A stretch of 64,000 bases of DNA, taken from Lepidodermella squamata (Eukaryota > Animalia > Gastrotricha). The stretch spans positions 2,480,001 through 2,544,000 of the forward strand of contig JBLDXI010000009.1 of assembly GCA_047495785.1 (NCBI GenBank). The letters are read 5' to 3'. Below are positions 11,310-59,236 of the stretch, one piece after another; the first letter of the stretch is position 1, and every line of letters starts with the position of its first letter. The notes beneath the pieces were generated by a model. The model saw only the letters and a list, made by a program, of their open reading frames with translations, had not been told where the DNA came from and did not search any database. The translations under genes and the position numbers were made by a program.

Positions 11310-11705
11310 ATGTTGACATCTACTCGATCTGCTTTATTCCTCGCTTTCATGTTCGTGATTTTCGTCAATTTTCGCCGCGTGGCTGGCGAAGTAAATTGCG
11401 AAAATCAGCTGCCTTATTCTTCTTCTTCGTCAAGCAATCAGCAATCAGCCGAAATGTGCAGTAAACGGTTGGCAATGACGCTGCGGCACGTTTGCAGGCT
11501 CTTCGCGCCTGCCAAGGCTATGATCGAGTCGAAACTCGCTTCGTCACTTCCTGGTTCAAGTCGAAAAAGTTCGACCGTCGTGAAAATGACACGGAGCGAA
11601 CGGCGGAAGGCGCGAAATCAAGCCGTGAAGGAAAAGCACGAGCGGCTTAAGTGCGAATGCTGTTCTAGGGCCTGCGACACTGCTACCCTGATCAAGTATT
11701 GCTGA
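11310..11705 (+). CDS. Insulin-like peptide 5, 8-Cys, most divergent member
   Basis: Signal peptide; VNC...MCSKRLAMTLRHVC; basic C-region; LKCECCSRACDTATLIKYC. Confidence 0.85.
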   Translation: MLTSTRSALFLAFMFVIFVNFRRVAGEVNCENQLPYSSSSSSNQQSAEMCSKRLAMTLRHVCRLFAPAKAMIESKLASSLPGSSRKSSTVVKMTRSERRKARNQAVKEKHERLKCECCSRACDTATLIKYC

Positions 11706-22995: not shown

Positions 22996-23682
22996 TTAGT
23001 AACGACGATTATATTGGTTTTGATAGTTTGTCAAAATGACCATGAAGACTCCGACCCAGATGCAACAAGTGACGATAGCGATCGAGGAGAGAATGATCGA
23101 TATGATATAAGTCTTCCGCGTTGCATTAGCGCGGCAGGCAAAAATCATCGCCGGAATGAAGAAGAAAAAACTTCCCGTAAAAATGGACATAATACCCAGC
23201 GTCAGAGCCGCTGCCCGCCAGCCGTCCAGTTTCGGGTCTGGTGCTGTTACCGGCGCCTGGACATTGACAGTAGGTGCAGGGGGTGCAGCATTAGCACCTG
23301 TATTCTGATTTGCAATGACTATGTTCGGCTGAGAAGTCGGAGCAGCGGGCGGCATCATCATCATCATCATCGACGGCTGGTACATCGGTGATGGCTGTAA
23401 TGGGTGGGAATACATCATTGGCATTCCATATGGGTAAGGCTGCTGCGAACTGGGTGTTACAGCTAGATTGCCAGCATTCATGTTAGGTGATGCTACCACC
23501 ATTCCATTCGGCGAATTCTGAGCTTGCCATGGCGCCGGGTAGGAAACAGTAGCTTGTTGCGAAGTGGTGTCGCTAGGCGTTTGGTTAGTTTGACTTGCTG
23601 GCATTTGGCCTGCGTAAGGGCTTGTCTGCTCATGATAGGGAGGCGGCAGTGGCAATCCTGCTTCTCCTTTACTTTCTTCCAT
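22996..23682 (-). CDS. Proline-rich CD225/dispanin-like membrane protein (no C-terminal Cys domain)
   Basis: N-terminal PPPY and Pro/Gln/Met-rich region, then two hydrophobic segments (SIFTGSFFFFIPAMIFA / YIISIILSSIAIVTCC) matching the other family members in the window. Confidence 0.65.
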   Translation of the reverse strand: MEESKGEAGLPLPPPYHEQTSPYAGQMPASQTNQTPSDTTSQQATVSYPAPWQAQNSPNGMVVASPNMNAGNLAVTPSSQQPYPYGMPMMYSHPLQPSPMYQPSMMMMMMPPAAPTSQPNIVIANQNTGANAAPPAPTVNVQAPVTAPDPKLDGWRAAALTLGIMSIFTGSFFFFIPAMIFACRANATRKTYIISIILSSIAIVTCCIWVGVFMVILTNYQNQYNRRY

Positions 23683-31160: not shown

Positions 31161-31976
31161 ATGCTTTCTCGTTCAAGAATTGCCGCAAGAATTACGCCGA
31201 TGGCGACGGACGGCGGACCGCCACCACCTTACGAATCGCTTCTGCCGATAAGGCTAGTCATGCCTTACCCCGAGTCCCCTACAACTGTGACTCGTTTTTC
31301 CAAGTAAGAACTTGTTTTTCAATAACGGGAAATTTCTCAAATTCCTTTAGCCCACCTCTTGATGTAGCAATCCCGTCGTCATCAAAGCCGGTCGACCACC
31401 AACGCCGACCGCCAGCCCTCAAAACCGGCTGCGAAATTGTGCCAGAACTGCTGCGATAATGTCTGTTTTCTCCGGAATGCCATGCGCGATTCCTGCGATG
31501 ATTTTCGCCTGGGGACGGCCGAATGCAACAGCGGCTGAGGTGGACGATCTGCCACCGACTCCGCCGGGTTACCAGTGCCAGGAACTCAACGAGCGACTCG
31601 ACACGGCTAGGAAGAGATACCGCATTTCTATCCTATGCAGCTGTCTTTGCCTGATCAGCATCATAGCAGTTGCCATCATTGCTGTCAACAAAACTGGTAA
31701 TTACTTCGGCAGCTTGAGTGTGGAAGACCGCCTTCAAGCCTCATGTCCCTACCCTCCGAGTAATGACCTTAAAAGGTAAGGCTGGAAATTGAATTTGAAA
31801 TTGAAAATCACCGCTGTTTTTTTAATAGGAATCTGCGAGATGGCCCGGGGTCGACATGGATTGGCCGATTTCCGAGAGCTTGCCCCAATTCGAAAGCGGA
31901 GAGCTATTGTAATTGCGTCGATTTGAAGTACGAAACAGTGTCCTACGTCAACTGCTGTGACAATTTCAACAACTAA
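31161..31976 (+). CDS. CD225/dispanin-like membrane protein with C-terminal 6-Cys domain
   Basis: Exons 31161-31303, 31368-31775, 31829-31976 (both introns phase 2). PPPPY; SVFSGMPCAIPAMIFAW; RYRISIL TM; CPYPPS...CPNSKAESYCNC...NCCD; TATAAAA at ~31045. Confidence 0.75.
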
Positions 31977-32132
31977 ATAGGCTTATCTCAGTGATTAATT
32001 TTTAGCTTATACCCTGAGTATTTATTGATCAATAAACATGTTTGGAGTGTGCAATTATTGCTCGAGAGTTGACATCGATTTTAGATTGTACAGTACAGGC
32101 AAGCAAAAAAGCGACAGAGCTAAATTTATCTG

Positions 32133-34430
32133 ATGTTGAAAATGTTGGAATTTCGTCAGATTTTCGCTTACACTTTATTCATCGTAGCTTTGACCGTGAA
32201 TTCCTTACTCACCTCGGCTATTGGCGATTCAGAAAATGTGACAAAATTAACGATAGGAACCGGTGAAAATTCTACGGAAGAAACTGAAATCATAGGTTTG
32301 TTGTTTGTTGTTGTTTGTACGTTACCGATATTATCGAAAGAAATTCCTTATTCTCATATTAGCTTCGACCGTCAATTCCTCAACCATCGACGATTCAAAG
32401 GGCAATGTTGATTCGGAAAATGTGACAGAATTAATTGGACCGGGTGAAAATTCTACGGAGGAAACCGAAATCATAGGTTTTTTCTTACCGATTTTTCAAA
32501 AACTCCTTGATTTTCAGGAATTTTATCCAGTTTCAGAACAAGACCTCACAAGAATAATTTTCGCAAATTATTCAAAAAGTCGACGGCCTTTAAAAGATGC
32601 CACGAAAGTTATTGTTGTCGAGGTCCAGCTAAGCGTTTTTGCTATCGATGAAGCTGTAAAATTAAGAAAAACTCACGTTTAATTCGTTTAATTTTTGAAT
32701 TTTTCAGGAAATTAAAAAATCAGAATTGTTAACAACGAGTTCTTTGACAGTCGCCTGGTATGACGAATTCCTGAAATGGGACGAGTTATATCCTCACAAT
32801 GAATCGATACCCGTTCTAACAGTCGATTTAGATGAGATTTGGATACCAAATTTACTTCTTGTTGATGCGTAATTTTTTAAATAATTTTTTAAATTTTCAA
32901 TGGAATTTTTAAAACTTTAGCGAGGAAAGGTACGCTCTAACCAAGCCGAAAGGTTTTATGATGTCAGTCTTCGCGAACGGTTATACTCAATTTTACCCCG
33001 AGGCCACAGTGAGCACATTCTGCGAGATGGATCCAACTTATTTCCCGTTCGACGAACACAACTGTAGTATGACTTTTGTTATGAACGGCGACACAGTGGA
33101 TCAAGTGATGATAAGGCTGGACAACAAGTCTGGCGCGTTCAACTTTTTCCGCCTTGAAGACAGCGAGGAATGGGCGTTGGTTGGTACATGGGCTGATATT
33201 TTCAACAGCTGCATACCCAATGGGGCTGATCAGCCTCCAAATTGTTACTCTGGGGCAGTTTTTTACATGTTGCTTCAAAGGAAAAATCTTTACTCGCTGG
33301 TTTCAATACTCGTGCCTGCTTTGATTCTTTCCTTAGTCGGCAGTTTCACCTTCATTATACCGGTCAGTTTTATCAGAAAACTTGTACCGGAACCAAATTT
33401 GCGGTGAATGGAACCTAATTTGATGTAGCGGAGCCAAACTCGAAATATTAAAAGATACACTTTTCGAATAATTTTAGGAATTCGAGGCAAAGCATGATTT
33501 CAGGATGGAACACTTGGCCCATGCAGAAGTTTGATTCAATGGCTATTTATTTGTAGCTATTTTGGCCAGGCTTGGTTCCCTTGAAAGAAGTCCAAAAGAA
33601 GTCCCAAGATTTAGCTCCGCTCACCTTAAATTTGGTTCCAGTAAAAGGAGGATCCCAGTTTTATTACCAATAATTTTTCGAAAAATCGTGTTTTTTAAGG
33701 TGGAGGATGTTGTGAAGTTGCGAATTACGGTTACTTGCTTGTTGGCTGTGGTCATTTTCCAGGCGACTGTTAACCATTACGAGATGCCAACGTCCTCAGA
33801 ACACCTGCCTCTTCTTTGCGTGTATCTGGATCTAATAAGTATGTACATCGCCTGGGCCATGGGATGCCAAGGCCTAGCTGTCTATTGCTACGAAAAATCC
33901 CGAATTCCTGGAAATGTACATTTTCCAACATTCCAGATTTCCAATTTAATATGAGATTTTTTCAGACTATGAATCCCTGCCTACGAGCAATCGGCGGATT
34001 TTTCAAATTTTCCCTGAGATTTTCGGCGATTAAAAGCTTTTTCCTGGAGATATTTCCCGGGCCTAATACCGGTGAAGGGCAAACTGATCAACCTAAGGAC
34101 GAACTGCTGTCGCGATATCGTGATTTTGAAACGACGAAATACAGCTCAGATCTATGCGTTTCCCGCGAAGAACGACTGACGGCTATTTTCGGCGAAGATG
34201 ATTTTAAAGCCCGAAAATTGAGTAAGAAAAAGCTGGCATCAGACCTCGACCCAACATACTGGCTGACATTCAGCGGATTGGTTGAAAAATTCGGTTTCAT
34301 CACGTATTTGCTGATGGTTTTAATAACTCCGATCGTCATATTTTACCGACTCCCGCCCAGAACGACTGGTCTAATTACCAGACCGCCGGCTTATTTATGG
34401 AAAGAAGGCAATGCTACTACGAGTCTATAA
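32133..34430 (+). CDS. Cys-loop ligand-gated ion channel subunit (divergent nAChR-like, non-alpha)
   Basis: Multi-exon. YSKSRRP, WYDEFLKW, IWIPN, Cys-loop CEMDPTYFPFDEHNC, LQRKNLY, M1-M4 hydrophobic segments, MPTSSEHLPLL; no vicinal loop-C cysteines. Confidence 0.85.
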
Positions 34431-36105
34431 TGGTTGCATTCGGAAATATTGTTGTTAGTAACGTCATCTTTGCGGCAGTAGACAATACAGCTTCGACTGA
34501 TCGCCGCTCCGTCGCTGAAAGTTCGACTAGAATAAGGAAATAGGTCATCAGCGCCCCAGCTAACTGTAATAAAAAAATGATGTAATTATAAAAATTAAGG
34601 TGGATTATTTATAAATTACAGCCATAATTGATTCGTTTCGCAAATAAAGCAGATTAAAGAAGGTCAGTGAAACAGGTTCGGAACCGCATTGGCCAAGCAA
34701 TACTAAGAACTGGAAATCATTTTTCAAAAAAATTAAATAAAAATCAAAAAATTAAAAATGCCCAAAATAAATTAAATTTTAATAAATTTCAATTTTTTTT
34801 AAATTTACCTCTACACCATTAGCTGCATCATCGCCTTGAAAAACGTGGTGAGTTTGAACTTGATATAGCGCATCTCGAACGCTCTGAGCTTTGAAGTTGA
34901 GAAAAGCCGACACAAATAAGTGGCAGATGAGGAATAGGAAGCAAGCACTCGACCATGCGGCGAATGTGAGTCGCATCAAAAAATCATCACCACCCCACCC
35001 CAACTGATAGGCCATCGCTAGAAATCCATAGAAGCCGAAAGCCATTGAAGCAGCGATGCAGAATCGAGCGACACTATCTAGTTGTTTCACGCTGTTGGCT
35101 AAAAATCGATAGGCCCGACGAATATTGTCGATTTCTAGGCGAAAAAACTGGAGAGTTGGCCGATCTGGTTGCAGCGGCATCCCGTCGATTGTTTCTATAA
35201 CTGGTGTTATCGCATTTTCATAGGTACTTTTCGCATCGTCTTCCTCCTGTTCCTCAGCTTCACTAGCATTTTCCTCCAGTTCTGCTTGACATTCCGCCAA
35301 TTCAATTTGCTCGTGGATAAAATTTTTCATGTGCCAAAATCGGCTGGCGAATTCGAAGGTGAGGCAGCAGATAAATAAATTGACGAAAATTGTAGCTGAG
35401 TCGGAGACAAATGAGAGAAATGCGACGAAGCCAACGCTTGTTAGGTAATAGGACTCATATTCCGGGGCTCCGAAAATTTGGTAGAAAGGCGCAACCATCG
35501 GCCCGAAAAGCTCCTTCCTCACGGTAGCCGCCACCGTGATCAGTGTATTATTCGTGAAAATGAAACCCCAACAAAATGCGTGAATAACTGGTCGAAAAAA
35601 ATTCAAAATTAATTTTGAAAAATTAAATAAACTCACAATAAAAAAGGCGGCACCTTTGTTTTGTGAAGAGTTTGCTATTGTCAAGCCAAAACGAGTTCCA
35701 CGATGTCACTCGATTTTCATCTCGGCCTGTCTTATTCTTCGCTATAAAGTTTTCGGTGTCTAATAGGTCAAATGTCTCGAGCCATCTATCCACGCCGTTC
35801 GAGCAGGTTTTAAGGAGGAAGGCCGTCCGAAGCAAGGCGCTGGTCAAATAGTAACCGGCGATCATTCCGGCGTACGAAACGCTCGAAACTCGTTTCGGGA
35901 CGTAGTAGAAGAGCAGCATTTCCCGGCAACAGTTGAGCCAGCCGAAGAAGCATAAACTGATCGGGTAGATGTAGTGCCAAAGCGTGTATTTCGGCTTGCA
36001 TTCATCGCTAGTTTTATGTCGCCAGCCTTTGAGCGACACTGTCGGATATAGGCCACATAATTGGAGGGAAATCAGCATTGGGTAGATGTTTTCCCTGTGT
36101 GTCAT
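34417..36105 (-). CDS. Gustatory receptor-like (GRL, 7tm_7-type) chemoreceptor/ion channel
   Basis: Exons 36105-35637, 35587-34809, 34709-34620, 34563-34417. N-terminal LQLCGLYP, multiple TMs, C-terminal TYFLILVE (TYxxxLxQF-like) motif, and phase-0 3' introns as in Gr/Grl genes. Confidence 0.8.
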
Positions 36106-38435
36106 GATTTTTCAGCTTTGAGATATTATTGAACATCCATCGCAGACGGAATTTTTAAAAATACTATTGATTAAAGTACTAAATAAAATGCTGAGAAGCT
36201 GAGATATAGACAATTTTGCAATTTGCATAAATTATTATTATTATTATCGATTCGTCAAAGAAAATTTGGCAAACATATATCGCAGGATATTTGAAATCAA
36301 GAAAAAATGCGGCAACGCGGTATATTTGGTGATTTTTTTAGATATATTACAGGTGTTTCGTGATTGATCAACCATGCACGCAGGGCAAAAAACCCGCATT
36401 GGATGTTGATAGTCCTCAGAGAGCCATTTATACAACTGAAAATCGATTTAATGTGTTGTAATTTCTCTGGGATAAAATGCGAAGGCTGGTCAACTTTATT
36501 GATATCGATTGTAAGCGATGAATATCGCCAGAATGACCGAATCAAGTTCGGAAAAAGAAACGCTAAATTTTTTGTTTCCGGCGAGTGATTATTAATCGCG
36601 AATTGGGTTATTTCCTGCCTACTTGTTCACGGCTGACTAGGTAATGAGATCACGTTATCACGGTATACTGAAACGGCGGTTAAATTTGGACCCGGTAAAT
36701 TTGATAAATCTTTTGACTGTTTTCGTACTCTACTATACAGGTAGTTCGAAAAATGTTGGTGCAATCACGTGAAGTGTGGAAGATCAGTTGTCCAGCGTAC
36801 CAAGTACCAAATGTAGAGCATTTTCAATCTAATTTCCCACAAAATTGAACAATAAACTTTAATCCGATTTCTGAGATTTTTTCCACCTCAAGCTAAAGGT
36901 GTCCACGCATACCATTCTACAATATTTACCTGCGTTTTACATTATAGATGTTCTTTGCTATTCGCGTAAACAGAATTCAGAATTCAGAAATGGCAAAGAA
37001 ATTAGAGCGAGGACTTCAGAGCAAAACGACAAAAGAGCAAATTAATTAATTGTAATGGCTTGTTTCAGTCAAGGGAAGGAGGCGAAACTGGATTAATAAA
37101 CAATGGTTTTTAATCCGTGTCCAAGCACACAGAAGCGAGAAAAAGACATCGAAAAGTGTGTTTTACGAAAGTGCAAAAAATTGAAATTGAAAAAATCGCC
37201 CTGCATCTTTCCATGCAAAAGTATCGTAGGGGATAACTCATAACATAGGCCTCCGATTTTCGATCTGAAAATATATTCTTACTCGTCACAACGAGTAGAC
37301 CACGATGGGCTATTTATTTTTGAAAATTACCCTAAAACTTTATTTTTTTAAATTGTCAAAGTTTCCGTTATTTTTCGTTTTTCATTTCATTTTATGGCTA
37401 AATATAAAGAAGATCGCATGTTTGGACCTCTCGCCACAGAACTCGGATTAATTTCCAGTTACTATAGCATGTGTTAGTTTTATTTATAGTATGCCCGGGC
37501 GGCGCTATAGGCACGAGTTATTTCAATGAAAAACATTGGCTCGTCAAAAGAAGAAAGATTTGATATTAAATATAATAATTTTGAGGAATTTTGATTTTGG
37601 TGTCTATTTTTTCAATGTAAAGAGCCCAGATTTGTTGGTTCTTGAGTTACCCAATATGTAATGCGAAATAAGCTGCGAAATAAGTAACGCCGAGTGAAAC
37701 GTGTTGTGCTTACAATGAATCATGCAAAAAAAAGATAAACAACTCTGCTTTGTAGGCAAAATGACTATAAAATTTTAAATTTCGCGCCAAAATAACATGT
37801 GTCAAGGTCGAATTTTCAAAAAATAGCCTATCGTTATGAGAAACACGTGTTTAGGTAAACTGGAAATTATCAAGTCGTGGAAATTCGTATTTCAATAGTT
37901 ATCCCCTAATAATCGATCAAAAAAATCGATGAAATTTCGGCACACACTTTTGAGGTCTTTTTCAAAAAATTTCTGAACGCCAGATGGTGCAAAAATAATC
38001 CAGTTTCGCCTCCTTCCCTTGGTTTCAGTGTGTTTTCTTGAAGTAGCCAACGCGAGAGCTATCGTTAGACAGCAAACGCGACAAAACGCCAAATTTTTTA
38101 TTTCGCGACAAAACAGCAAAAAATAGCGAAAAGATTGTGTTTTTGCTGTCATGTCGCAAATAATGCAATCCGCTGTTTTGCAGCTTTTGCTGTTTTCGCG
38201 CCATGCCGAGCCGAGCTATCATTGAATTGCGTAATTTGCGTAATATTTTTCCTTAATTTTCTCTTTTTCGTTGATCTGATTCAAGTTTGCTCTAACTTTG
38301 CTGCTTCGATAAATTATTTATCTCAAATTGAATTGCTCTTTTGTCGTTTTTTTCTATTTTTCTCTTTCTTTTTTCGTTTTTTCAATTGCTCCAAGTCCTT
38401 GCTGTTTTCGGGCAAATAGCATATTGATCCTATCC

Positions 38436-39299
38436 TACACCTTTTTTCATTTGCAATTTCATTATTTTTATTAAAGAAAAACGCGTTTATTTTTTCATGA
38501 TCATCAGCGTATTCATTTAATTCATTTTCTTACTTTTTTCTACCTAAGAATTTACTCGATCTTCGAAGGTTCGCTGTATGCGAATACGAAACCCGAATGG
38601 GATGAATTATATATCAAATTGAAGCTAGATATATAATCTTTTCAAATATGCGATCAGATCGGCAAAATCATTATTTGTTTCGCAGAAACTAAGCAGTAAG
38701 TAGAATGAACTGCAAAGATGTTTTCCTTGGGTAGTTTTTATATTTTATAGGTATAAGGCCCCTCCCTCCTCCCCAAAAACGATTAGAACAATCAGGCGAA
38801 GGTGATATCTCGAGTAGAAGCGATAGAACCTCAAAAAATTTGGCTTTAGTAGCATTTTGGGCAATAGCTTACGCGGGTGCTGAGGTAGTTTTCACAAATA
38901 TTGCTTTGGTTTCATCATGAAATGATGAAATTAGCGAAGACTAAGTAATAGAATAGTTCCTTAGCAGTTATTTGTTGAAAAATAAACATAATTGTAGGTA
39001 AAATCAGAAGAAACTTTCCGAACAACCAGTCGGCTAAAACGTTGAATACCTTCAATAACAAAATGGCATCCAGTCTTTTAATATCACAGCTAGATAGATC
39101 AGATCTCTAGCTTCAATTTGATATATAGTTCACCCCATTCGGGTTTCGTATTCGCATACAGCGAACCTTCGAAGATCGAGTAAATTCTTAGGTAGAAAAA
39201 AGTAAGAAAATGAATTAAATGAATACGCTGATGATCATGAAAAAATAAACGCGTGTTTCTTTAATAAAAATAATGAAATTGCAAAGGAAAAAAGGTGTA
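38436..39299. mobile_element. MITE with ~190-bp near-perfect terminal inverted repeats
   Basis: 38436-38628 is the reverse complement of 39107-39299 (TACACCTTTTTTC.TTTGCAATTTC...GAAGCTAG) with only a few mismatches. No internal coding capacity. Confidence 0.9.
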
Positions 39300-39433
39300 T
39301 CCAATTTCACGGCTATATAATTAAAATAACTTTTTAATTGAAGTTCTCACATTTTATTGCTGAAAAATATACATAGGGAATCAGCAAAAATCAGGTTTCT
39401 GTTGCTTCAAGTCACTAGTTTTATAACTGTTAA

Positions 39434-40966
39434 TCAGCGGCTTTGAACGGCGATTTCATACGCTGGCGGTTTGTGGATCAAGCCATTCATGCCGTCTTCA
39501 TACTCAACCTGCGGCGTGGTCAGTTTGAAATTGAAAGGATGCAACATCGCCGTCAGGAAGACAAAATACTCGACGCGGGCCAACGCTTCACCTAAGCAAA
39601 TTCTTGGCCCGATGCCAAATGGCATAAAGTGCGAAGAGTGGCTCAACAACTGCCCATTCTCGCCAATCCACCGATCCGGATTGAAAACCTTCGGCCTATC
39701 CCAGTAATTTTCATCGAAATGAAGAGCGGCGGCGTTGTAGCAAATCAAGGTATTAGCCGGTATGTCGTACCCGGAAATTGTATCAGGCTCATCGAGGTTG
39801 GAATGGAACACAGCCGTCGGAGCTAGCGATGCGTGGCGAAGAACTTCATGCATCACCGCGTCAATGTAAACCAACTGGGGGCGATCGTTCGAGGTCGGCA
39901 AACGGTCTGTATCAATCACCCTATCAATAGCATCTTGACATTTCCGTTGAATTTCAGGGTATTTCGTTAGGTAGAACAACGTCCAGCATAACGCTGTAGC
40001 AGTTGTTTCAGTTCCAGCCAAAAACATTTCCGTCATTATTTCCGCGAACTCACGCAGATTCATGGCTTCATCCTTCTGGCTCTGCGATGCGAGGTACAAA
40101 TCGGGGAAATCGCGAATGTTCTCTGGGTCGAAATCAGCTTTGTGCTCTTCAATAGCTTTCCTCTCCAGCTTTTCAAGCAGATCAACACAGCCTATAGACG
40201 CTTGGATCTGGCTCGGAGTTTTAAAGTATTTCAAAAATGGCAATAGCATGAAAGCAGTGCTTTCGACGGTCGATTGTTTCGTCAGTTCAAAGACGAAATC
40301 TAGAACTTTCTGAAAACTCGGGTCGCTGTAGTGCATGCGTTTTCCGATTACCAATGAGCATATCACGTTGCAGACTGCATTAGTAACCACATTTGTTGGA
40401 TTGAATGACGTCTTATCTTTAGCTAATTTGCTGAAATCATCCAACAAAACAACGACTTCTTCCTGGATCTTGACAACCATCGCCTCCTTACCCATTCCTA
40501 TGTAGAAAGGAAATTCAGATTTTTTGAAAAATTCAAATTTTTTTATACCAAAATCTCGCATAGCTTTTAACCCGAACCGGCGGTGCTTTTTCCATCGGTC
40601 GTTGTTAGCAAACACAATGCCTTCCTGCATTTTTTCGTAGCCGGGAATTCGTTGTTCGAAACGGCCGCTGAACGTTCGACCATGCTCAACCAGGGCCTCG
40701 TGGATTACCTTTGAATCGTTCAAGCAAACCATGCGGATCGGACCCATGTAGAACGTGAAAATTGGGCCGTATTGCTTGGATAAATCACGGAAAAATTCCC
40801 ATAGGATAGGCTTCTTCCCAGCAAACATGAGTTTATTCAAATTTCCAAGCCATGGAACTGGGCTAGGGCCTGGGGGCAGGCGGTGCCTCTTATCCAAAAG
40901 ATACCGCCGATGAGTTAGAAGCAAAAGAAATGCCGGGACAAGAATAGCCAATGCGTAGAAAATCAT
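39434..40966 (-). CDS. Cytochrome P450, CYP2-clan-like
   Basis: N-terminal TM, LPPGP, WKKHRRF, AGTETT, EVLR, PDRW, heme motif FGIGPRICLG. One 51-nt intron at 40498-40548. Confidence 0.95.
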   Translation of the reverse strand: MIFYALAILVPAFLLLLTHRRYLLDKRHRLPPGPSPVPWLGNLNKLMFAGKKPILWEFFRDLSKQYGPIFTFYMGPIRMVCLNDSKVIHEALVEHGRTFSGRFEQRIPGYEKMQEGIVFANNDRWKKHRRFGLKAMRDFGIKKFEFFKKSEFPFYIGMGKEAMVVKIQEEVVVLLDDFSKLAKDKTSFNPTNVVTNAVCNVICSLVIGKRMHYSDPSFQKVLDFVFELTKQSTVESTAFMLLPFLKYFKTPSQIQASIGCVDLLEKLERKAIEEHKADFDPENIRDFPDLYLASQSQKDEAMNLREFAEIMTEMFLAGTETTATALCWTLFYLTKYPEIQRKCQDAIDRVIDTDRLPTSNDRPQLVYIDAVMHEVLRHASLAPTAVFHSNLDEPDTISGYDIPANTLICYNAAALHFDENYWDRPKVFNPDRWIGENGQLLSHSSHFMPFGIGPRICLGEALARVEYFVFLTAMLHPFNFKLTTPQVEYEDGMNGLIHKPPAYEIAVQSR

Positions 40967-41968
40967 TCTTCAATAAATTCTCAAAAATGCGGTTGTTCTG
41001 GAAAATTACTTCCTATATAAAGAGACTGATAAGACTTTACACGTTAAAGTTCGACGTAATCTTATGGTACAATGTTCTCACGTAGACAAGATAAGGACAA
41101 AAATAGTCATTACAGCAAGCTTTATACCAATGTCCACTTTTCTGTGAAATCTTTTGTGAATACCGTAAAAGCTCTTATTCAGGACAAAGCCTAGTCTTGT
41201 CACTTGTCGGGTCTTGAAAATAGGACAAATGGATTTTCCAGGGCTGTTTTGCCTCATTAGCATAGTTTTATTGAATCGTGCAAAAATTTGCCATAATTTA
41301 GTACTTGCACCTTCATCATCGAAAAATCCATGTGGAATAGTTTCAACCACTTTAGGGTGTAACTGCACGATTAATACAAGCATTGGCCAGCTTTTACTAT
41401 TAGTAAGGACGACCACATTGATTCACAGATTCACAGATTCACAGAGCTTCGGGTTGTTAAGGTGGAGGGGGTGCGGTGAATTCAGTAGAAGTGATAGAGA
41501 ATCTCATCATACTGAAGGTTCCATAATATTCATAACGTTTTTTTTGAAAAATGTTCGATGCATGAAGTTGAACGCCTTCCAAAACACGCGAAATGGATAG
41601 TTTCTGTTCTTTCCTTTATGCATTGGGGTCATTAATTTGTAAAATAGCCTATCGATTTCTAGATATTTTAGGTATAAACATGGCTGATTGTATATAGCAA
41701 GAACCATGATATAATCACGCTTGATGGTTGTTTCATCAATCCTTTACCACCACGTGCCAAAAAAGTGTTTGGGTAACACATTTTCATTATTTCAGAAATT
41801 ATCTCCCTTGCAATTTCTCTGACGCAATATAAGACATCTTTATTCATATAATTCATTCTCGAATTTGTAAAACATTCAAAGAATAGCAAGTTATTGCAAT
41901 AAGTACCCATAACTTCCGCGCATCAATCCTATATAGATGATGCTGCAGCTGAACTAAAATTCCGACGT

Positions 41969-42867
41969 TCAGAACATACTGTTCACCCTGTCGCAACAAA
42001 TTTGATGGCTAACACCATACTTTTGACTAGCACAATCACAATAGTTTGATGCTGATATCGATGGACAGAAAGGAAGGTGATTAGAAGTACCTCCACCCAT
42101 CGATCTGGAAAAAAGATTGAATGGATTTAGCTTAATAGAAACAAAAATGAAACCCACAATTTTTCTCGAAATGATGGCGGATATGAGTACATGCAGGATA
42201 CAAGCGATGATGTCGAAGTATAGGACGTTCCGTAAGATTGGTACATTTTAGTCAACTGAATCGCTCTAACCACCGGATAGATTGAGCAGCCAGCCAGAAG
42301 AAGCCCGAATAAGCAAGTTATGCTCAAAATTGCAGAGCATTGGTACCGCGAACGAATGCGAAACTCCCGAGTCATTTGCTCCCGATTTACATAGACCCCA
42401 ACTACTACAGGCGGGACGTTTTCTTCATTAGGATCGGATGCAGGCATTGATCCAATCATGTTCGGAGGCTTCCAAGCTAGGATTACAGCTGGAATGGCGC
42501 AGCATAACATTCCAGTAAGTAAGGATAGGGCGGATGTAATTCTGACGCAAGTCCTCATTTGAGATAAAGCACAGGTCCACATGGAATTGCCTCTATAACC
42601 ATACCCTGGGCCATAGCTCGCTCCCATTCTATAACCTGGCCCGTAACCTGGTCCAAAGCCTGAATCAGATGAATTGATGATGACTACATTATTGCCGGAT
42701 GGGACAGATATTTGAGTCGGACCGGATGCTGCATAGCCTGGGGTATGGTGAGGAACAGGCCCAGCTGAAGCAACTGGCTTGTAGGGTGGTGGTGGGGCGG
42801 ATGGAATTCTCAGTTGACGATCACTGACAACTTTTGATTCATCAGTATCCGTCTCAAGGTTTTCCAT
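41969..42867 (-). CDS. CD225/dispanin-like membrane protein with C-terminal 6-Cys domain
   Basis: Exons 42867-42158 and 42104-41969. PPPPY; SLLTGMLCCAIPAVILAWK; RYQCSAIL TM; CMYSYPPS..KL/SMGG..CPSISASNYCDC..ICCD. Confidence 0.8.
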
Positions 42868-43477
42868 GATTATTCTATAAGCAATGGCAAGCCAAACTAA
42901 AATAATCTTCTGGCATGCATTGATCAGCTTGTAGTCAGTGTAATTCTAAGCGCGAAATGTTTTTTCTATCAGCTTTTTTCTGTTTGGTGTGGGGTTCGCC
43001 TAGCAATTTCAAGGTAATGAATTATTTACCTATCGTGTGCAGTAGGTTTTCGATCGCGCCTTATAATAAAGAATAACTGATTATTGCAGCTGGCTGCCAA
43101 TTTACCATATTTATTGAATGAATGATTCATCAAATGACAGTTTAATTGAGAGACGAGAATAGAAGGGCACAGAAGGGTTTCTGTAACTCAATCACTAACT
43201 GGAAGATCAAAATAGCTTGCTAATGCAGGTTCCCATGTCAAATTCATTTGATTGATTGTTTGCTTTCTCAGCATGGCTAAGTCTCAGCCGCGGGCCAAGG
43301 CGAACAAGACTTGACTAAGGATTAAGACTAAGGACTAAGCGCAATCGTAATAATAAATTTCCATTCCCCACTGAGCATCATTATCAAAGGTATCAATCTG
43401 AAGAATGAAAGAATTATAGAGTCCTTTCATCTTCAGTGAGTGGATCTTGCCATTATCCTCCAATATTTGGTCGGTAA

Positions 43478-44086
43478 TCAATAGGGGAACGGTGTAGTTG
43501 TTGTTGCCGATAACTCCCTGTGTCTTGCAGAAAACTGGGCCGCTCGTATAATTGGATATATTGAGCATCCAAAAAATGCAACTAGAAAGATGGCGCATAA
43601 AGCTAGTATAATCGCCCGTTGATAGCGCATGCGAATCCTATACTCCCTAGCCATTTGATCGCGGTTCATTCGAGGGCCATTTGGAAGCATCGCAATTGGT
43701 GCAATGTTTTCTTCTTTGAGATCAGCTGCTGGGGTGTGATCAACAGATATCGGACGTTTGTAGGCGTAAATCACTGCTGGGATGGCACAGCAGAGCATTA
43801 GGCTAAACAGGGAGATAACCGATGAGACTTTGGCGCATCTCCTCATCCGCGATAAGGGACATGACCACATCAAGTTTCCATAACCTTGACCGCTCCGACT
43901 CCTCCGTCTTTGCGTATCAAACTGCGGATCAGGGTCTGTATCTATGATGAAGACATCGCCGCCAGATGGTGGCCGGTTTTGTGAAGCTGAACTGCCCGAT
44001 TCGTGCTGCTGTAAACCCAGCGCATGGAAAGGGGCCGAATGCCGTGGAGATGTGCGTGACTTTTTTCTCCCTTTTTCGGGTTCCAT
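43478..44086 (-). CDS. CD225/dispanin-like membrane protein, lacking PPxY and the Cys domain
   Basis: SLFSLMLCCAIPAVIYAYK; RYQRAIIL TM; stops at TTTTPFPY, where paralogs continue into the CxYPYPPS domain. Confidence 0.75.
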   Translation of the reverse strand: MEPEKGRKKSRTSPRHSAPFHALGLQQHESGSSASQNRPPSGGDVFIIDTDPDPQFDTQRRRSRSGQGYGNLMWSCPLSRMRRCAKVSSVISLFSLMLCCAIPAVIYAYKRPISVDHTPAADLKEENIAPIAMLPNGPRMNRDQMAREYRIRMRYQRAIILALCAIFLVAFFGCSIYPIIRAAQFSARHRELSATTTTPFPY

Positions 44087-44536
44087 ATTGCCGTTTGCGT
44101 AGATCCTTCTAAAAGCTCAACATTTCATGAAGAATGGTGTCTTCAATTGCTTAGTTTTGCTCGCAGTTAGCGTATTGTAGTGAAAGAGTAAATAATTAAT
44201 ACATGTTGATTGATTTTTCTTTCGATAAAGATTTCGACTGTTTTATACTCATACTAGGCCCCAGTCAGAACTAAGTTGGTTTGAAGGCCCAATTCGATAA
44301 AATGGCTTGAAAGTGTAACATGGTTGACCGTGTTACGTTGCTTCTTTGATTTTTCAGTGTTAGCTATGTGCAGCAGGAATTCTTCTTCCGGAGAAGCCAT
44401 CGTAACAATAATTTCTACCGCAGATGAAAATCATCATTAGGCATCAGGCATATAGGCATTAGGCATTAGGCTTGGATATAGTAAACTTGTCATCGTAAAA
44501 CTTTATTCCACTTGAAAAAATTCAGAAGAATGATGG

Positions 44537-45481
44537 TCAACTTTTAGTAGTGACCTCAATGCAGCATTCGTCGAAGGAATAATCATACAAGCGCGAACGA
44601 GAAACACAATCGCAATATGATCTAATCGATTGTACCCACCGAGCGACGCACACGTTGATAGCATCATAAATAGCTCCGCCCATTTGTCTGTAAGAAACGT
44701 TAATTTTTAGCCAATTAAATCAAAACTTATATTCTCACAATTTTTGTCCGTTTGACGGCGGGTAAGGATATTGACATATTAGCGGCGGAGAGGTTTTAGT
44801 CATTGACGTTGTCGCCTGTGTAGCAGCAGACAACTCGCTGTATCTTGCTGAAAACTGAATCACATTAACTATCGGATAGCATGCGATACCGAAGATAGAA
44901 ATGACCAGAAAGCAGCTCGTCGCCAAAATAATTGCCGTTCGGTAACGCGAACGAATGGCCAGCTGATCGTAGTTAACTACCCTGAATTCATTGGAGATGG
45001 GTGTCGTGACACCAGGCGGATTGACGTTAATGTTGTTGGAATCAGCTTGGCCACCATTACTTGCAACAGGATTCGGCTTTTTGTAAGCGTAAATCATAGC
45101 TGGTATCGCACAGCAAAGCAAGCCAGTGAATAGCGACATCACCGCTGTAACTTGAGCACATTGTTTAAGCTCTGACAAAGCACAGCACATGGCGTTGGTG
45201 TTGCCAAGGAAGAAACCCTGGGTTCTTCGCCGTGAGTGCCATGGGTCGAGCATCATAGTCGGAGCAATAGCAGTATTTATGATGACGACGTTGCCACCCG
45301 GTTGAATTTGGGCAGGGGCTGCAGTTTGAAATCCCTGATGATTCCCGGTATATGATGGAACAGCGACCGTAGGCGGCCTGTAAGGTGGCGGGGCTGCAGA
45401 ATATGGCGGCGGTGGGCGACTGTATTGTCTTTCCATTTCCGGTTCCATTTCCTTTGCTTCTTGTTGAAGCGTCCTGGCCAT
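44537..45481 (-). CDS. CD225/dispanin-like membrane protein with C-terminal 6-Cys domain
   Basis: Exons ~45481-44739 and ~44687-44537. Two PPPY; SLFTGLLCCAIPAMIYAYK; RYRTAIIL TM; CQYPYPPS..KL/QMGG..VC..SYCDC..ECC. Confidence 0.8.
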
Positions 45482-48800: not shown

Positions 48801-51800
48801 GTACTCAGCCAGTGAGTTTAAATAGTGAAGATTCTCCCCAATTCCAATCGCGCTTCTCGGGTAAGAGTCGCGATCACCCATAACAATTTCAATGGATTTG
48901 GCCTGTGAAAGACCTGCCAGTCCGAATGTGAACTCCGGGCGCATAAGTTTCGTGAAGTTGAGATGCCAAAGCCCGAGCACACTTTTCGGCTTCTAAGCAT
49001 GGGAAATTTTCAAATTATTTAAAACTTTTCAAATTTGCCACCAAATATTTTAGAAATGAATACAAAGCACATAAATCTTGGATTTAAAGCATTTCTCGAT
49101 TTCTTTATTAATTTTTAATCTAAAATTTGAATTCACAAGTAAGTATTTTGCCTATTTTGCCTATTTTGCCCTCAGCATCTCCGAAATTCTGAGCTTTGAC
49201 GCAAAGATGAATCATAAATCATGCTCTTGCTCTTACCAAGAACTTAATTTTCAAAGTGAATTTGAACTTACATCACAGTTTTGCCCTGTCCAGCCTGGAT
49301 TACAGAGGCACCGATAGTTATCAGGACCATCAGGTTCGCACAAACCCATTTCGCAAGGGCTGTACTTCTCGCAGTCATACGACTCTATCACCGAACAAAT
49401 CCTACCAGGGTAAGATGGCTTACAAACACATCGACCTTCTTCAACGTAAGCAGTATTTTCAGTGATACACGATGGTGTAATAGGCGCATCGATATCCGGG
49501 CAATAACCCTTATTCTTGCAAACGCATTGAAGGCGGCTGATTTCTTCAGGGGACAATGCCACTCCATAGATCATCAAACAGCTCATAGCATAATTGACTG
49601 GCAATTGAATACGGCTTAGTTTCCAGACTCCATTTCCAGATGTCGAGTTCGACTCCTGGGCAGCTTGCGCTTTCTCTAATACCGAGCCGAATTCCGAAAT
49701 TAGTTTCAACACGATCGCTTCATTGTCCATTTCTACTGTAAAGGAAACGAAATTCCAGTCACTAGATCCCAAATAATTCGTTTCTACATAAATTGGTCGG
49801 TTAGATTGTCGAGTTGTTTGAACGATAATGTAGTGATCAATAACTTCCACGCTGACTTGCACAGCAGGGCTGGAAATCGAAAACAAGTTCACATTGCGTA
49901 GGAGTGGAGTTGAATGACTTGATCGATATATGTAGAAAGCGATGGTCATATTCATTAAAAGTGGCAGGGGGTCTTCAGTGAAGTGATCTGCGATGTGATC
50001 ATTGAAACGTTTTTGATTGTAGACAAACTCTGCATTGTTAAATGGGCCAGTCATGAATTTTACATCGTGACGTTTCCGCCCAGCTTTCTTCTGAAATGTT
50101 TTGTAACCTTTGATCACATTTGTTTCGCCAGCCGTATCCAGCGGGAAGTAAGCCATTAAGGCATTCGTGGAGCTACAACAGGTCGGGTCGGTCTGTATAG
50201 ATGACAAATTTGCAGCTTAGCACAGGCCCGATCGGCTATAGGCAAGCGGCACTCGCATGAGGAACCTCTAGCGCATTCCACTCGAATTGGTTCGACTGTC
50301 TTTTCTAAATCATCAGCTTTCGGGCAATAGCCTCTGTTCTTGCAAATGCAATGGAATAAACCGATCTGGCTGGGCGCTAGAGCAGCTTTGTAAATCAGAA
50401 GACAGCTCATAGCGCTAAGCTGTGGCAACTTTATGGGGTCCAACGTCCAAGTTGTGGTTTCGGGAGCGGGTGGAAAAGCTAATACTTCAAAATTCTTCGT
50501 AGCAATTACGGAACCAAATTCGGAAATCAAGTTAATGACAATCGATTTTCCAATCAGGACCGATACAGCGAAAAAGTTCCATTGACTTTCAACCATTTCG
50601 CGTTGAGATTCGACGGTCAAGCTCGACGAAGAACCGTTTGAAAATCTCGTAACGATGCTCGCAGTTAACTTGTTCCCTCGCGATTCGATAAGAATTCGGC
50701 AGAACGGACCTCGAAAGCTCAATACTGTATGTTTCCACGATTCTCTACTCGAACAGTTTCGATACAAATAGAAAGAAATCGTCATATTGATTATTGGTGG
50801 CAGGAATCCATTATCGAAGTATTCATGCAAGTGTTGGGAAGATGTTTGCTGTTTATAGACGAATCGTTCATATCCAAATGGATCGAAGTGATTCTCCAAG
50901 TTGACTTCGCTAGATCCAGTTTTTCGTACAATAGTACCGGGCCATTCAACTGTATTGGCCTCGTCCAATGCCTCAAGTGGTAGATACGCTATTAATTCAG
51001 TAACCTTAGGTCCAAAGAATTGTCGCGTGAGTTTCCTTCTCTTGCACAATGGATCAATTTTCTTAGCGCAAATTCGTCCCGTGTAACCCGGCCGGCATTC
51101 GCAGTCATGGGACATCAGGGCATTTTGGGAATGACATGCTAGCGGGATGCTCGTGGCCTCTGCTGCTTCGGGGCAGTTTCCGCCAGCTTTGCAAACGCAA
51201 TGTAGCTGAGCGATCTGCTCTAATGTCAGCTGGGCCTTGAAAAGCATAATGCAACTCAGAGCATCGCCAAGTGGAAGGCGAATAGGGCTTAACTTCCAGA
51301 TTCCCGATTGCAAATATTCGTTCTGCCAATCTAAACTAGCACTGCCCATCACCAATCCTCTTTCCGATACGAATTCCAAAGTGGTCGAAGCATGCCTTAT
51401 AGCGAAGAAATTCCAATCGCCATCTTCCATCTCGGTTGGATAATGCAGCGTCGTGTTTGATATTACACTCACAAACCTTGCTAGAATCGTGTTGCCCGTT
51501 TGTTCCACACTGATCGAATAAGCAGGTCCGATGAATTCGAACAGGACCCTGTGGTATTTAATATCGATCGAGGAGCAGTTCTGAAATAGGTAGAACGCGA
51601 TAGTCAATCCCGAAAGCGAGGTGATAATTCCGTCTGTAATGTGCTCAGGAATAGAGTCTTGAGCAGTGTTTTGCCGGAACACAAGTCTCGTATCGCCAAA
51701 AGCACTAACCATCTTCTCAAGATTCACTTCAGCAGGTACCTTCGCGCTAGCCAACATCTGATCTCCTGAAATCACGTTCAATTGTTCCGATGCATCTAGC

Positions 51801-54800
51801 GGAAAATAACCGATCAAGTCGTCAGCTTTAGGACTGATAACATGACGGCTTAATCGTCGTCGTTTACACTCCACTGAAGAGGATTTCATGCAAATCCTGC
51901 CGTAGTAGCCAGCTTTACAAATGCATTGCGCTGGGAGTGACTTTTCGGTGTTGTTTTGATCGCAACTCAGCGGAATTGAATCTTGAGGGGTGGGTGTAGC
52001 TTGAGGGCAATTACCGCGGTTTTTGCAGACGCAATGTAACGTACCAATCTCTTTAGGGGTCAAAGGAGCGTGGAAAACGATCAGGCAACTTAAGGAATCG
52101 TCTTTGGGGAGTTTGATTGGTCTCATTATCCAATCCCCTTTTACCGGTCGTCTTAAACGAAAATGTCTGGCTAGCAATAATCTCGCCTGTTTCCGAGAAA
52201 AGCCCCAGCCCCATGACTTTATCGGTAATGAAAACTGATGCAGCAATAAAATTCCAGTCGCCGTCAATAACATCAAACTGCGACTCGACATCAACGCTTG
52301 ATCTCTTATTCGGCGTGACAATAATCAATCGTGGTTTGGTGCCAACTGTTGTTACAACAACTTCAAAACCTTGCAGATCGAACCTAACAATTTCCCGTTC
52401 GAAGAGAACCTCGGAACTGGAGCAAGACCTGAAGTAATAGAACGATATTGTAAGCGCCATATTTAGCGGCATGGTACTGGTCGAAATATGCTCAGGTATT
52501 GAGGCCGTAAGACTTGTCTGTGAAAAAACTTCAGTGATAGAGCCGAAAGGTCCCGTGGTAGATGTTGTCTGCAGAAACTCAGAGCCGGGTCGCTTCACAA
52601 AAGTCCGAGCGCCCCTTACGCCGTTTTCAATCTTTTTCGAGTCCAACGGTAAGAAGGCCATCAAACTGTCTACGCGGGGACCGAAATAAGGCCAATTCAG
52701 TGATCTGAATTCGCAAGTTATGAGCGGCGGCTTTGAACAGATCCTACCGCTGTATCCATCCTTACATTCGCATCCTGCATCTGACGACATGGCCGTACCC
52801 ACCTCGGCGCATTTTAGAGCTGCTTTTGCCTCGTCACTTGCTTCGGGGCAGTTTCCTTTAGTTTTACAGACGCAATGAAGCTTCCCGACTTGATCTTTGG
52901 ATAAAACCGAGCTGAACACCGATAAGCAACTCATGGCATCGCCAACTGAAAGCTTGATTGGCTTTAGTCTCCACTCGGTCCCAAGCCCCGAGGGCAATTG
53001 CAACGAGTCGAAAGCTTGGCTGCCCAAAGTATCGCCTCTTTCCGACAAAATATTTAGATACATTTTGTCCGAGGATTCTGAAACAGTAGCTGCAACGAAA
53101 TTCCAGTCATCGATAACAAGTTCATCTAAAGAGTCAACATAGTAATTCACTTCCCCAGTAGTAACGCTTAGGCGAATTTTGTTTCCTGCTACGGCAATCT
53201 TAACATTGTATGCAGGTCCTTCCATGCGAATGATGTCACGGTAAAATACGATATTATTCCGAGGGCAGCTGCGGTAGAGGTAGAAAGAAACCGTCAAATT
53301 CATCAGCGCAGGTAAAATCCCCTCGGATATGTGCTCAGGAATGAAGTATGCCTGGTGGATTTGGAGGAAAACTTTGGTTTCCTCGTTGAAAGGTCCCAAC
53401 ATAGGTGCAAGAAACCTCGATATGTCAACTTGGGAACTCATTTGCAGCGTCGGAGTGCCTCTAATCACGTTCGTTGGATCCCGCGGGTCTAACTGAAGAT
53501 GAGCTAGCATAGTTGCAACTTGAACACCGTAGAATGGTCGACTGAAAGTTCGCCTTTCGCATTTTGTATCCAATGATTTCGAACACGTTCTGCCACCGTA
53601 GCCTGGCTTACAAATGCACTCATCTGCAGAGTAGTTCAGGGTGTTTTCGGCATGGCATTCCAAAGGAACCTTCACATCCGGGCAAACGCCCTTATTTTTG
53701 CAGACGCAATGAAGCCAAGAGATTTGTGTCGGGGTCAACGCAGTTCGAAAAATCATAAGGCAGCTCAAACCATCATCTACGGGCAGCTGAATGGGTCGCA
53801 TAGTCCATTTATCGGCCATGCCGATTGCAGCAGCGTTCCTAACCTTGACTGCTCCGAAGTACATGCCGGTTTCTGACATAATATTCATCTCAATCTGATT
53901 CGTCACAGTTACAGTTACAGCGAAGAAGTTCCAGTCGCCATCTACAAGTTTGAATGGCGATTTTATGGAGTAGGATTTCGACTCCCAATCAAAATTGGCC
54001 GTAAGAAAATGTCTCTTTGAGGAGACGTGAAAAGCGAATAAAGGTGCATCGATTCGCATGAGCTCTCGTTCGACTGTCACTTCCTCAGATGTGCAATTTC
54101 GAAACAAATAAAACACCAGGGTCAAATTGGCGATATCTGGTAAATTGCCTTCCTGATGAAATTGAAGGACAGCACCTTCCTTTTGCACGAAAACCAGGTT
54201 GCTTTTGCCGAATGGGTCGACCTTAGTAGTGAGCTCGATCGTCCCATCAGCTATTTGTAGGGTTCCGTTGCCAAGGATAATATTTCCAACGCCATTCGTG
54301 TCAAATGGAATATAGGCGACCAAACTGTCAGACCCCGGAGCATTAGTTTCTCTAAGGTAGATCCGCCGTTGTTTGCACTCCTTAGTTGTGATTTTCGCAC
54401 AAACCCTGCCGGCAAATGGCCACTGACATTTACAACCTGTGGTTGTAGCTGTCCCACTGTTGTAGCATTGCAAAGCGATTGGCTTTGGATCGCCATTTAA
54501 AGGATCTGCCGACGGGCATATACCATTATAGCGGCACACACAGTGTAATGTTGCTATTTCTTCCTTCGATAGTGCTGCTTGGTATACCAGAAGGCAGCTT
54601 AACGCATCTCCAACAGGTAAGCGAATCGGTTTAAGAGTCCAATTCGATAATTGCTTATTCGGAATGTTTAAATCAAAATCCGCTCTGCTCGAAATCTGGC
54701 CTGTTTCCGTAACCAACTGCACTGTCGCTCGTCTGCCTGAAATGCTCACCGTTGCAGCCACGAAATTCCAGTCGTCATCTTCCAGTTTATCACTCGATTT

Positions 54801-58537: not shown

Positions 58538-59236
58538 TCACATCATCTTATTATCACAGCAGTTCTTTGGGCCAAAGCTTTGTTGGTTTGGTGGACCGTT
58601 TTGCATATTCATCCCATTCCGAAGTGGAGCAGTTTGCTCAGGTAGCATTTTCACGTCCTTCTGTTGCGCTGCAGAAGGAACTTGTGTTCCCGATGACACT
58701 GAACCATAATTTATCGGCTCTGATTGCCGATTCGACAGAACGATGGCACATACTGCGCAGATGACAAGCAATGCCCCCAAATAGCTGATAATAGACAAAA
58801 TAATGGCGCGTCGGTAACGAACACGCATCGGATACTCGTTGGCACTGCTGTTGATGATGGCCCTTTCCGGTGCCACTTTATCACTGTTTGGTTGTTTCCA
58901 TGCGAAGTAGACGGCTGGAATTGCTGTGAAAAGAAATCCAGTGAAGATGGACGCAGCCGACATGGCCCTAGCGCAGTTCTGCATGTTAGCAAAGGAACAT
59001 AACCATAGTGTATTTCCGCAGCATGAATTAGTATCATGACCAGGATCCGCGGTTAACCCGCCCAGGTCGATTTGCAAATTCGAGGCCTCGCCAGAGCCGT
59101 CAGAATTATTGCCTAAATTTCGCGAGGAGCTAGGCGAAGCTGAAGCCACTTCTTTGTAAGGTGGTGGTGGTTGTGAAGGATAGGGAGGTGGGGAACCAAG
59201 CTCTTCGGCCATTCTCATTTTTTCGCTAGCCAGCAT
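58538..59236 (-). CDS. CD225/dispanin-like membrane protein, degenerate C-terminal domain
   Basis: Two PPPY; SIFTGFLFTAIPAVYFAWK; RYRRAIIL TM; only the terminal NCCDN of the Cys domain is retained. Confidence 0.78.
   Translation of the reverse strand: MLASEKMRMAEELGSPPPYPSQPPPPYKEVASASPSSSRNLGNNSDGSGEASNLQIDLGGLTADPGHDTNSCCGNTLWLCSFANMQNCARAMSAASIFTGFLFTAIPAVYFAWKQPNSDKVAPERAIINSSANEYPMRVRYRRAIILSIISYLGALLVICAVCAIVLSNRQSEPINYGSVSSGTQVPSAAQQKDVKMLPEQTAPLRNGMNMQNGPPNQQSFGPKNCCDNKMM

Follow-up and report, generated by a model that had tools for sequence, protein, structure and literature searches.

Dispanins, the CD225 proteins of Pfam (PF04505: IFITM1-3/5/10, PRRT1/SynDIG4, PRRT2, SynDIG1, TRARG1, TMEM233, TMEM91), are described as two-transmembrane proteins whose first segment holds a double cysteine and a conserved alanine, with G-D and A-x6-A motifs, an intron in the loop between the segments and a C-terminus of fewer than 10 residues (PMC3282796). 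They have been described as proteins that act in the membrane itself and at its cytosolic side and leave hardly anything exposed to the outside. The N-terminal PPxY motif of IFITM3, with the ligase NEDD4 as its partner, offers a precedent for control through this end of the protein (PMC4532365). Here we describe a family of small membrane proteins, found so far in a single animal genome, in which one clade joins a dispanin-like scaffold to a new small cysteine module. Three of the genes in question (B, C and E) lie in the window, the 64,000-nt stretch C9:2480001-2544000 of the 121-Mb genome of the gastrotrich Lepidodermella squamata, where introns measure ~50 nt. The module was absent from the protein, domain and structure collections that we searched. 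With confidence somewhat above even, we read the proteins as receptors or trafficking proteins that bear PPxY and a small ectodomain of a new kind, forming a clade of a genome-specific, dispanin-like family.

In common with dispanins, the family has two hydrophobic segments preceded by a long proline-rich N-terminus, with a double cysteine and a conserved alanine in segment 1, a K/R-flanked loop, an arrangement in tandem arrays and, as in IFITM3, an N-terminal PPxY. It differs in carrying C-C-A-I-P-A...R-x-x-Y instead of G-D/A-x6-A, and a loop with no intron, which in the clade is 36-47 residues long; moreover, the C-terminus of the clade extends over 70-90 residues with a predicted disulfide module, compared to fewer than 10 residues in dispanins (PMC3282796). 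NDFIP1/2 and the herpesvirus UL42/UL56-type proteins are likewise small membrane proteins with one or two PPxY motifs on the cytosolic end, and the Pfam model UL42, a PPxY-bearing viral membrane protein, matched residues 22-49 of gene E below its cut-off (E 0.0025). However, NDFIP (three transmembrane segments) and UL42/UL56 (tail-anchored) differ from the family in topology and fold, lack a cysteine ectodomain and show no homology to it past the motif.

If a relative of the dispanins carries a folded, disulfide-stapled outer domain, the dispanin scaffold is convertible into a receptor or a tethered ligand, and the tail would add an undescribed mini-domain to the catalogue. The family also illustrates genome-specific innovation in membrane proteins, including several PPxY-bearing families, in a barely studied invertebrate group. 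Its value is bounded by the single genome, the remoteness of the CD225 link and a function that is proposed only.

A cysteine module in a separate last exon

An earlier note on this stretch had placed three paralogs in it that share a C-terminal cysteine spacing and a phase-2 intron at one and the same position. We recovered all three genes with that spacing and that intron. The pattern common to B, C and E is C..YPPS..K, the phase-2 intron, and then C-x8-11-CxC-x11-13-CC, which reads C-x8-CNC-x12-CC in gene B, C-x8-CDC-x11-CC in gene C and C-x11-CDC-x13-CC in gene E, with an extra upstream cysteine in each of the three within C..YPPS. The intron falls two bases past the codon of a lysine that itself stands four residues past YPPS; the penultimate exon thus ends two bases beyond C..YPPS-x3-K, the remainder of the module being encoded by the last exon. 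Because this last exon is small and separate, the module is invisible to annotation based on open reading frames (ORFs). A six-frame regular-expression search of the whole window for the cysteine pattern returned only B, C and E and one unrelated cysteine-rich ORF (3506-3739). The cysteines are conserved, as the earlier note had it, but the residues between them are not uniquely divergent: the core is equally divergent among the three genes, with identities of 28-38% compared to 23-34% in the tail.

Gene B lies on the plus strand. Its first exon (31161..31303), assigned from the ORF and the sequence, encodes the N-terminus with PPPPYESL, in which a PPxY overlaps a YxxL-type signal, and is followed by a phase-2 GT donor at 31304; it joins 31368 in frame, reading ..TRFS-N-NPVVIK... 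The core exon (31368..31775; E 2e-47 with the window-paralog profile A1 in the search of the genome itself) encodes hydrophobic segment 1 (PCAIPAMIFAW), a loop with a second motif, PPGY, hydrophobic segment 2 and SCPYPPSNDLK, and ends in a phase-2 donor. The last exon (31829..31976) contains the cysteine module, ..ACPNSKAESYCNCVDLKYETVSYVNCCDNFNN, and the stop (E 3.5e-15 with the tail profile A3).

Genes C and E are both on the minus strand. The first coding exon of gene C (42158..42867) encodes PPPPY, NVVII, LCCAIPAVILAWK, a long loop, hydrophobic segment 2, a Ser/Thr-rich stalk and SCMYSYPPSFREK; its last exon (41969..42104) encodes the module FCPSISASNYCDCASQKYGVSHQICCDRVNSMF and the stop (tail profile E 2.6e-15). 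The first coding exon of gene E (44739..45481) carries two PPxY motifs, PPPPY and PPPY (PPPPYSAAPPPY), followed by NVVII, LCCAIPAMIYAYK, the loop, hydrophobic segment 2, a stalk and ICQYPYPPSNGQK, and the last exon (44537..44687) encodes the module VCVARWVQSIRSYCDCVSRSRLYDYSFDECCIEVTTKS and the stop (tail profile E 2.6e-11). The part that follows hydrophobic segment 2 and runs up to the stop, across the intron, measures 74 residues in B, 80 in C and 90 in E.

Two public runs were compared over a part of the stretch that takes in C, D and E but not B: X1, which is RNA-like, with coverage of exons only and zero depth in intergenic bins, and X2, which is DNA. A 989-nt X1 contig that spans the first coding exon of gene C aligns to 41890-42104 and 42158-42926, skipping 53 nt of the gene. 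The skipped sequence has CT..AC ends, corresponding to GT..AG on the minus strand, and matches the predicted intron exactly. For gene E, X1 contains a joint 44687/44739 that skips 51 nt with GT..AG ends, the shorter side of this joint being only 20 letters long. The DNA run X2 covers all of this part, and the intron sequence is present in it with variants inside; neither joint was seen there. Since the X1 joints remove the predicted introns and X2 keeps them, the cysteine exons of C and E are spliced into transcripts, which bears out the phase-2 introns proposed for them earlier. For gene B, splicing of exon 1 and of the last exon is predicted from the sequence.

The tail module across the genome

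A profile built from the six window paralogs (A to F) and searched against the genome itself gave at least 55 core-family matches. Many of these relatives, located on contigs C60, C25, C36 and C42, end the core exon with ..TTTT-x-SPC-x5-YPPK-x3-K and, in the sequences read, have the phase-2 intron at the identical position, followed by a 68-residue last exon of the form ..LYSDNARFYCDC-x12-YCASYVNNIMFN. A genome search with the tail profile returned 16 matches, 12 of them intact tails spread over five contigs, each located immediately after a core exon of the same type on the same strand. The remaining four, fragmentary or frameshifted, have no core exon ahead of them. No intronless copy holding the whole module in one ORF was found by this search. 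Orphan, truncated or frameshifted tail exons with no upstream core occur at L038:501-1363 (C60:259000-259862), L040:450-608 and L039:804-995, and look like debris of tandem duplication.

In the alignment of tails, Y-C-x-C and one later cysteine are invariant, and an alanine and a V-N pair are nearly so. The six cysteines of the earlier note apply to the window clade, not to the module as conserved elsewhere, which has four cysteines, one of them upstream of the intron. The pair added in the window clade consists of the first cysteine of the last exon and the second cysteine of CC.

The 17 long-loop genes formed one clade in the tree (support 93/84), and the tail-less genes D, L008a, L008b and L018 were nested inside it. 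Because of this nesting, the tree suggests that the tail was gained once and lost several times, with D as a case of loss.

Paralog D (43478..44086, minus strand) encodes the core LCCAIPAVIYAYK and a long loop and ends with ..TTTTPFPY and a stop, with neither PPxY nor cysteine tail; it has X1 coverage. At its 3' end (43391-43494), X1 contigs show joints between opposite strands, with loose ends at 43407/43494 and 43481. This irregularity may represent a small strain inversion or an assembly artefact and could change the end of the D frame. Paralog F (58538..59236, minus strand) is a single exon with two PPxY motifs and FTAIPAVYFAWK, and carries a different 66-residue tail ending ..KNCCDNKMM; a near copy is present at C9:3.64 Mb (L005). 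Paralog A (22996..23682, minus strand) is a short-loop, tail-less member of the wider family with PPPY and FFFFIPAMIFAC. On contig C7 (~1.29 Mb), an ORF with eight cysteines (L030:2286-2438, plus strand; ..CWCSDYFASQCKCQ..CHCNGNVCDC..) is located 470 nt downstream of another short-loop family member and may be a second kind of cysteine tail.

Searches for relatives and predicted fold of the tail

Searches and structure predictions were run exon by exon, so that the tail queries consisted of the last exon without the upstream cysteine. A full HMMER search of 1.84 billion protein representatives with a 17-gene core profile gave 0 matches at E<=1e-3, the tail-only profile not being searched there. 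Neither the core nor the tail had a relative in 5.8 billion clusters, and scans of Joint Genome Institute (JGI) metagenomes with the core and tail alignments found none either. With word-based searches, no protein came up for gene C, a 27-member alignment or L031, the canonical CD225 gene of this genome; a feature search of the ESM Atlas gave no usable match. None of the three last exons matched a Pfam model at E<=10, and a profile of 11 tails found nothing at E<=10 among the PDB sequences.

For the structure of the tail, the last exon of a copy on C25 (L014) was modelled with AlphaFold2 (AF2) from the 11-tail alignment. The model is a hairpin of two helices (residues 23-36 and 40-52) with CxC in helix 1 and the later cysteine in helix 2; its predicted local distance difference test (pLDDT) is 71 overall and 83-86 in the hairpin. 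Compared to PDB folds, it had nothing at E<=0.001 in Foldseek, and the best Z in the VIA wide search was 3.4. The two predicted cysteine-tied helices presumably resemble alpha-hairpinins and CS-alpha/alpha toxins in outline. However, those carry CxxxC...CxxxC, in contrast to C...YCxC...C(C) in the tail, and no sequence or fold match was found. As a small disulfide-rich domain held at a membrane, the tail would also, as we see it, resemble the Lynx1/Ly6 prototoxins; Ly6 domains, however, have an all-beta three-finger fold and a glycosylphosphatidylinositol (GPI) anchor, and the tail is predicted to be two-helical.

The last exons thus match no Pfam family, PDB sequence or PDB fold, in agreement with the earlier description of the module as unrecognised. 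For a module of 45-70 residues, these blanks are weak evidence, and they are partly due to the seeming absence of the lineage from the databases.

Relationship to the CD225 family

The core of the family has a constant order: a proline-rich N-terminus, usually with PPxY, (N)VVII(N/D), segment 1 with the motif ..SLFTG-x-L-CC-A-I-P-A-x3-A-W-K, the loop and segment 2. In the long-loop clade, the loop of 36-47 residues ends with R/K-x-x-Y-R/K. The alignment program hhalign linked this clade to the short-loop family of the same genome at 99.4%. The (N)VVII(N/D) stretch lies ~40 residues before hydrophobic segment 1 (in the window at ~42672-42692, ~45275-45295 and ~43910-43930), and the C60-type exon starts exactly there; we take it to resemble a SUMO-interaction or beta-addition motif.

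The core had been assigned to CD225 in the earlier note. Under the strict Pfam test (PF04505, gathering score 27.1 bits) this assignment failed: B, C and E gave no match even at E<=10, and no family member tested reached the cut-off. What did hold is a transitive link below threshold. Tail-bearing relatives scored 12-16.6 bits, and the best family member reached 22.9 bits (E 1e-4) over profile positions 6-66 of 68. PF04505 was listed, always below the cut-off, by 12 of 27 family members, the next family by 4 of 27. In a six-frame scan of the genome with PF04505, a single gene exceeded the cut-off (L031, 28.9 bits), which is canonical and outside the family, and some family members appeared below it. 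Aligned with hhalign to the canonical CD225 genes L031 and L032, a template too thin to decide on homology, with an effective sequence number (Neff) of 1.5, the wider family gave 40% over 27 columns and the clade 46% over 20. Among the PDB chains, we noticed one CD225 chain, PRRT1 9zks_M, whose CD225 region 225-296 was aligned at E 0.5 only.

Several dispanin features are present in the family, namely the two hydrophobic segments, the K/R-flanked loop (AWK(K/R)P ... R/K-x-x-Y-R/K) and the long N-terminus. The double cysteine and alanine of helix 1 appear as L-C-C-A-I-P-A in C, D, E and most relatives, with a single cysteine in B and none in F and A; the alanines are invariant. The dispanin G-D and A-x6-A loop motifs are not conserved in alignments A4 and A6, where EQ-x-AR(D/E) and R-x-x-Y are conserved instead, and the aspartate before helix 1 is absent from the family alignments, an arginine taking its place. 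There is no loop intron: in all members read, one exon spans from before segment 1 to past segment 2. As the canonical gene L031 also lacks this intron, the comparison carries little weight. The 74-90 residues after segment 2 in B, C and E depart from the short dispanin C-terminus.

Considering these results, we regard a true remote homology of the family to CD225 as likely, and "dispanin-like" as a fair label, with CD225 membership unproven. The alternative, which we consider unlikely, is that the family is unrelated to CD225 and represents an independent two-segment family that converged on the CC motif and the proline-rich N-terminus, in which case functional analogies with IFITM and PRRT proteins would not apply. 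This alternative draws on the missing PF04505 matches of B, C and E, on the absence of any member at 27.1 bits and on the limited hhalign match to the bona fide CD225 genes of the genome, as well as on the lack of the G-D and A-x6-A motifs and of the loop intron (PMC3282796), on a full HMMER search with no CD225 protein at E<=1e-3 and on core fold searches that returned only generic helices. It has to contend, however, with CD225 being the most often listed family, with several alignments that stay in register over both segments, with the PRRT1 chain being aligned at its CD225 region (though at E 0.5 only), with the fit of the CC and alanine positions of helix 1 and with a canonical CD225 gene that lacks the loop intron as well.

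Proposed topology and working

Many relatives contain PPxY, as do A, B, C, E and F; gene B adds the loop PPGY to its N-terminal PPPPY, C has one motif, and E two. In the proteins as we picture them, the proline-rich N-terminus, which typically bears one or two PPxY motifs, would lie in the cytosol. Segment 1, with a helix break and CC-A-I-P-A, would probably be re-entrant and would be followed by the K/R-flanked loop and by segment 2 as the membrane-spanning segment. The ancestor of the clade would then have gained a C-terminal extension of ~70-90 residues, made up of a Thr/Ser-rich stalk, a cysteine followed by YPP, the conserved phase-2 intron and a predicted two-helix last exon around the invariant Y-C-x-C...C. 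Including the upstream cysteine, the tail could form two disulfides, with a third possible in the window clade.

The AF2 model of the core was poor (pLDDT 62), with a helix at residues 16-33, a break, a helix at 36-47 and a long helix at 77-131. Segment 1 appears in it as two short helices with the break at G-x-x-CC. The model is compatible with a re-entrant hairpin followed by a helix that crosses the membrane, and fold searches with it returned generic helices only.

Positive charges flank segment 1 on both sides, runs of 4-8 threonines come directly after segment 2, every subtype has an even number of cysteines, and an NDT sequon is conserved in all five C60-type tails. Together with the N-terminal PPxY and the loop PPGY of gene B, these features point to a tail on the outer or luminal side, and an extracellular tail is plausible. 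There, it would bind a partner, and the PPxY end could dock NEDD4-type ligases, so that the protein and its cargo would be ubiquitinated and sorted. By likeness to IFITM3-NEDD4 and to NDFIP-type adaptors, the PPxY end probably controls such ubiquitin-dependent sorting. The proteins would accordingly be receptors or trafficking adaptors rather than hypervariable immune sensors.

A number of points weigh against this picture. The disulfide pairing is assumed, the tail having been modelled without the upstream cysteine. PPxY is absent from D, and in most C60-type genes the 900 nt ahead of the gene contained no PPxY, an LPLY alone appearing in two. The distribution of charges around the segments does not settle the topology, the three window tails have no N-glycosylation sequon, and the tail would end up in the cytosol if both segments crossed the membrane.

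This last arrangement is the basis of a different explanation, in which the four conserved cysteines (C, CxC, C) bind zinc or are palmitoylated and the tail forms a small intracellular interaction knob. The topology of IFITM proteins has itself long been disputed, and four conserved cysteines could form a Cys4 site; the unsettled charge pattern and the missing sequons of the window tails would be compatible with it, too. We nonetheless rate a cytosolic tail as rather improbable, considering that the N-terminal PPxY and the loop PPGY of gene B need the cytosol to meet WW domains, which places the tail outside, that poly-Thr stalks and the conserved NDT sequon are typical of exposed segments, that the window clade gains its cysteines as a pair and that the predicted break in segment 1 fits a re-entrant hairpin.

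Selection on the tail

The earlier note had taken the ectodomain to be variable and the family to be possibly a diversifying one. We determined the ratio of nonsynonymous to synonymous substitution rates (dN/dS) by the Nei-Gojobori method for ten C60/C25-type pairs. Tail values ranged from 0.08 to 0.54 and were <=0.29 in eight of the ten pairs, compared to 0.19-0.39 in the core. In C36/C42 pairs, the tail dN/dS was 0.44-0.49. One near-identical pair had a tail dN/dS of 0.9, with too few changes to carry weight, and synonymous sites were saturated in the window trio, so that the ratios do not bear on it. The tail dN/dS is thus close to or below that of the core, and the tail is about as divergent as the core. 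Judged from these ratios, the tail is constrained and under purifying selection, not diversifying; as it is also no more divergent than the core, the term "diversifying" is unsupported.

A diversifying recognition or antiviral surface family, with an ectodomain evolving fast under positive selection, would be in line with the tandem arrays, with a family that is large and restricted to this genome and with the low identity of 23-34% among the three window tails. The window cores, however, are as divergent as the window tails, and tail ratios of 0.08-0.29 in eight of ten C60/C25-type pairs, with a maximum of 0.54, compare to 0.19-0.39 in the core, which makes this explanation very improbable; an antiviral role is likewise unsupported.

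Neighbouring genes

Cys-loop ligand-gated channel genes adjoin gene B (32305-34430, plus strand) and paralog F (60534-61845, minus strand); PF02931 matches at 46 bits on 32958-33407 and at 108 bits on 61264-61845. The genome contains ~2530 first-look candidates for the Cys-loop channel domain. We rejected synteny with these channels as evidence of function, as they are too numerous and the other tail clusters lack them. That the proteins are auxiliary subunits of the expanded channels, presenting a tethered mini-domain on the outer channel face in the manner of the Lynx1-type prototoxins, is highly doubtful, even with channel genes right beside B and F and with PRRT1 and SynDIG proteins being channel auxiliaries, since chance adjacency is expected with 2530 candidates, the tail clusters on C60, C25, C36 and C42 have no listed channel match nearby and F lacks a proper tail.

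As a broader speculation, to which we assign little probability, the dispanin-like scaffold could have become, in this animal lineage, a general carrier of disulfide-rich "tethered ligand" domains (the 4/6-Cys hairpin and the 8-Cys module) that act from outside, for example on Cys-loop channels, while the PPxY end would set their residence time. If true, this would make the carrier proteins a novel class of auxiliaries to channels or receptors, like the Lynx1 prototoxins but on a CD225-type anchor.

Three further features of the window are noted here. The cysteine-rich ORF at 3506-3739 (minus strand) is an open frame of 78 residues, dense in CxC and CxxC (..CCACDKCSCNPCQC..CNPCSCNPCNC..); it has a metallothionein-like look, with no Pfam match at E<=0.01. 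At 49251-56009 (minus strand), intronless open frames of 318, 721 and 1318 residues consist of repeated units, each ending in a cysteine-rich EGF-like piece, and teneurin-type EGF models match these frames below their cut-offs. Finally, a cluster of intronless insulin-like peptide genes occupies 7071-11705 (plus strand), with a PF00049 match of 33 bits on 7071-7439.

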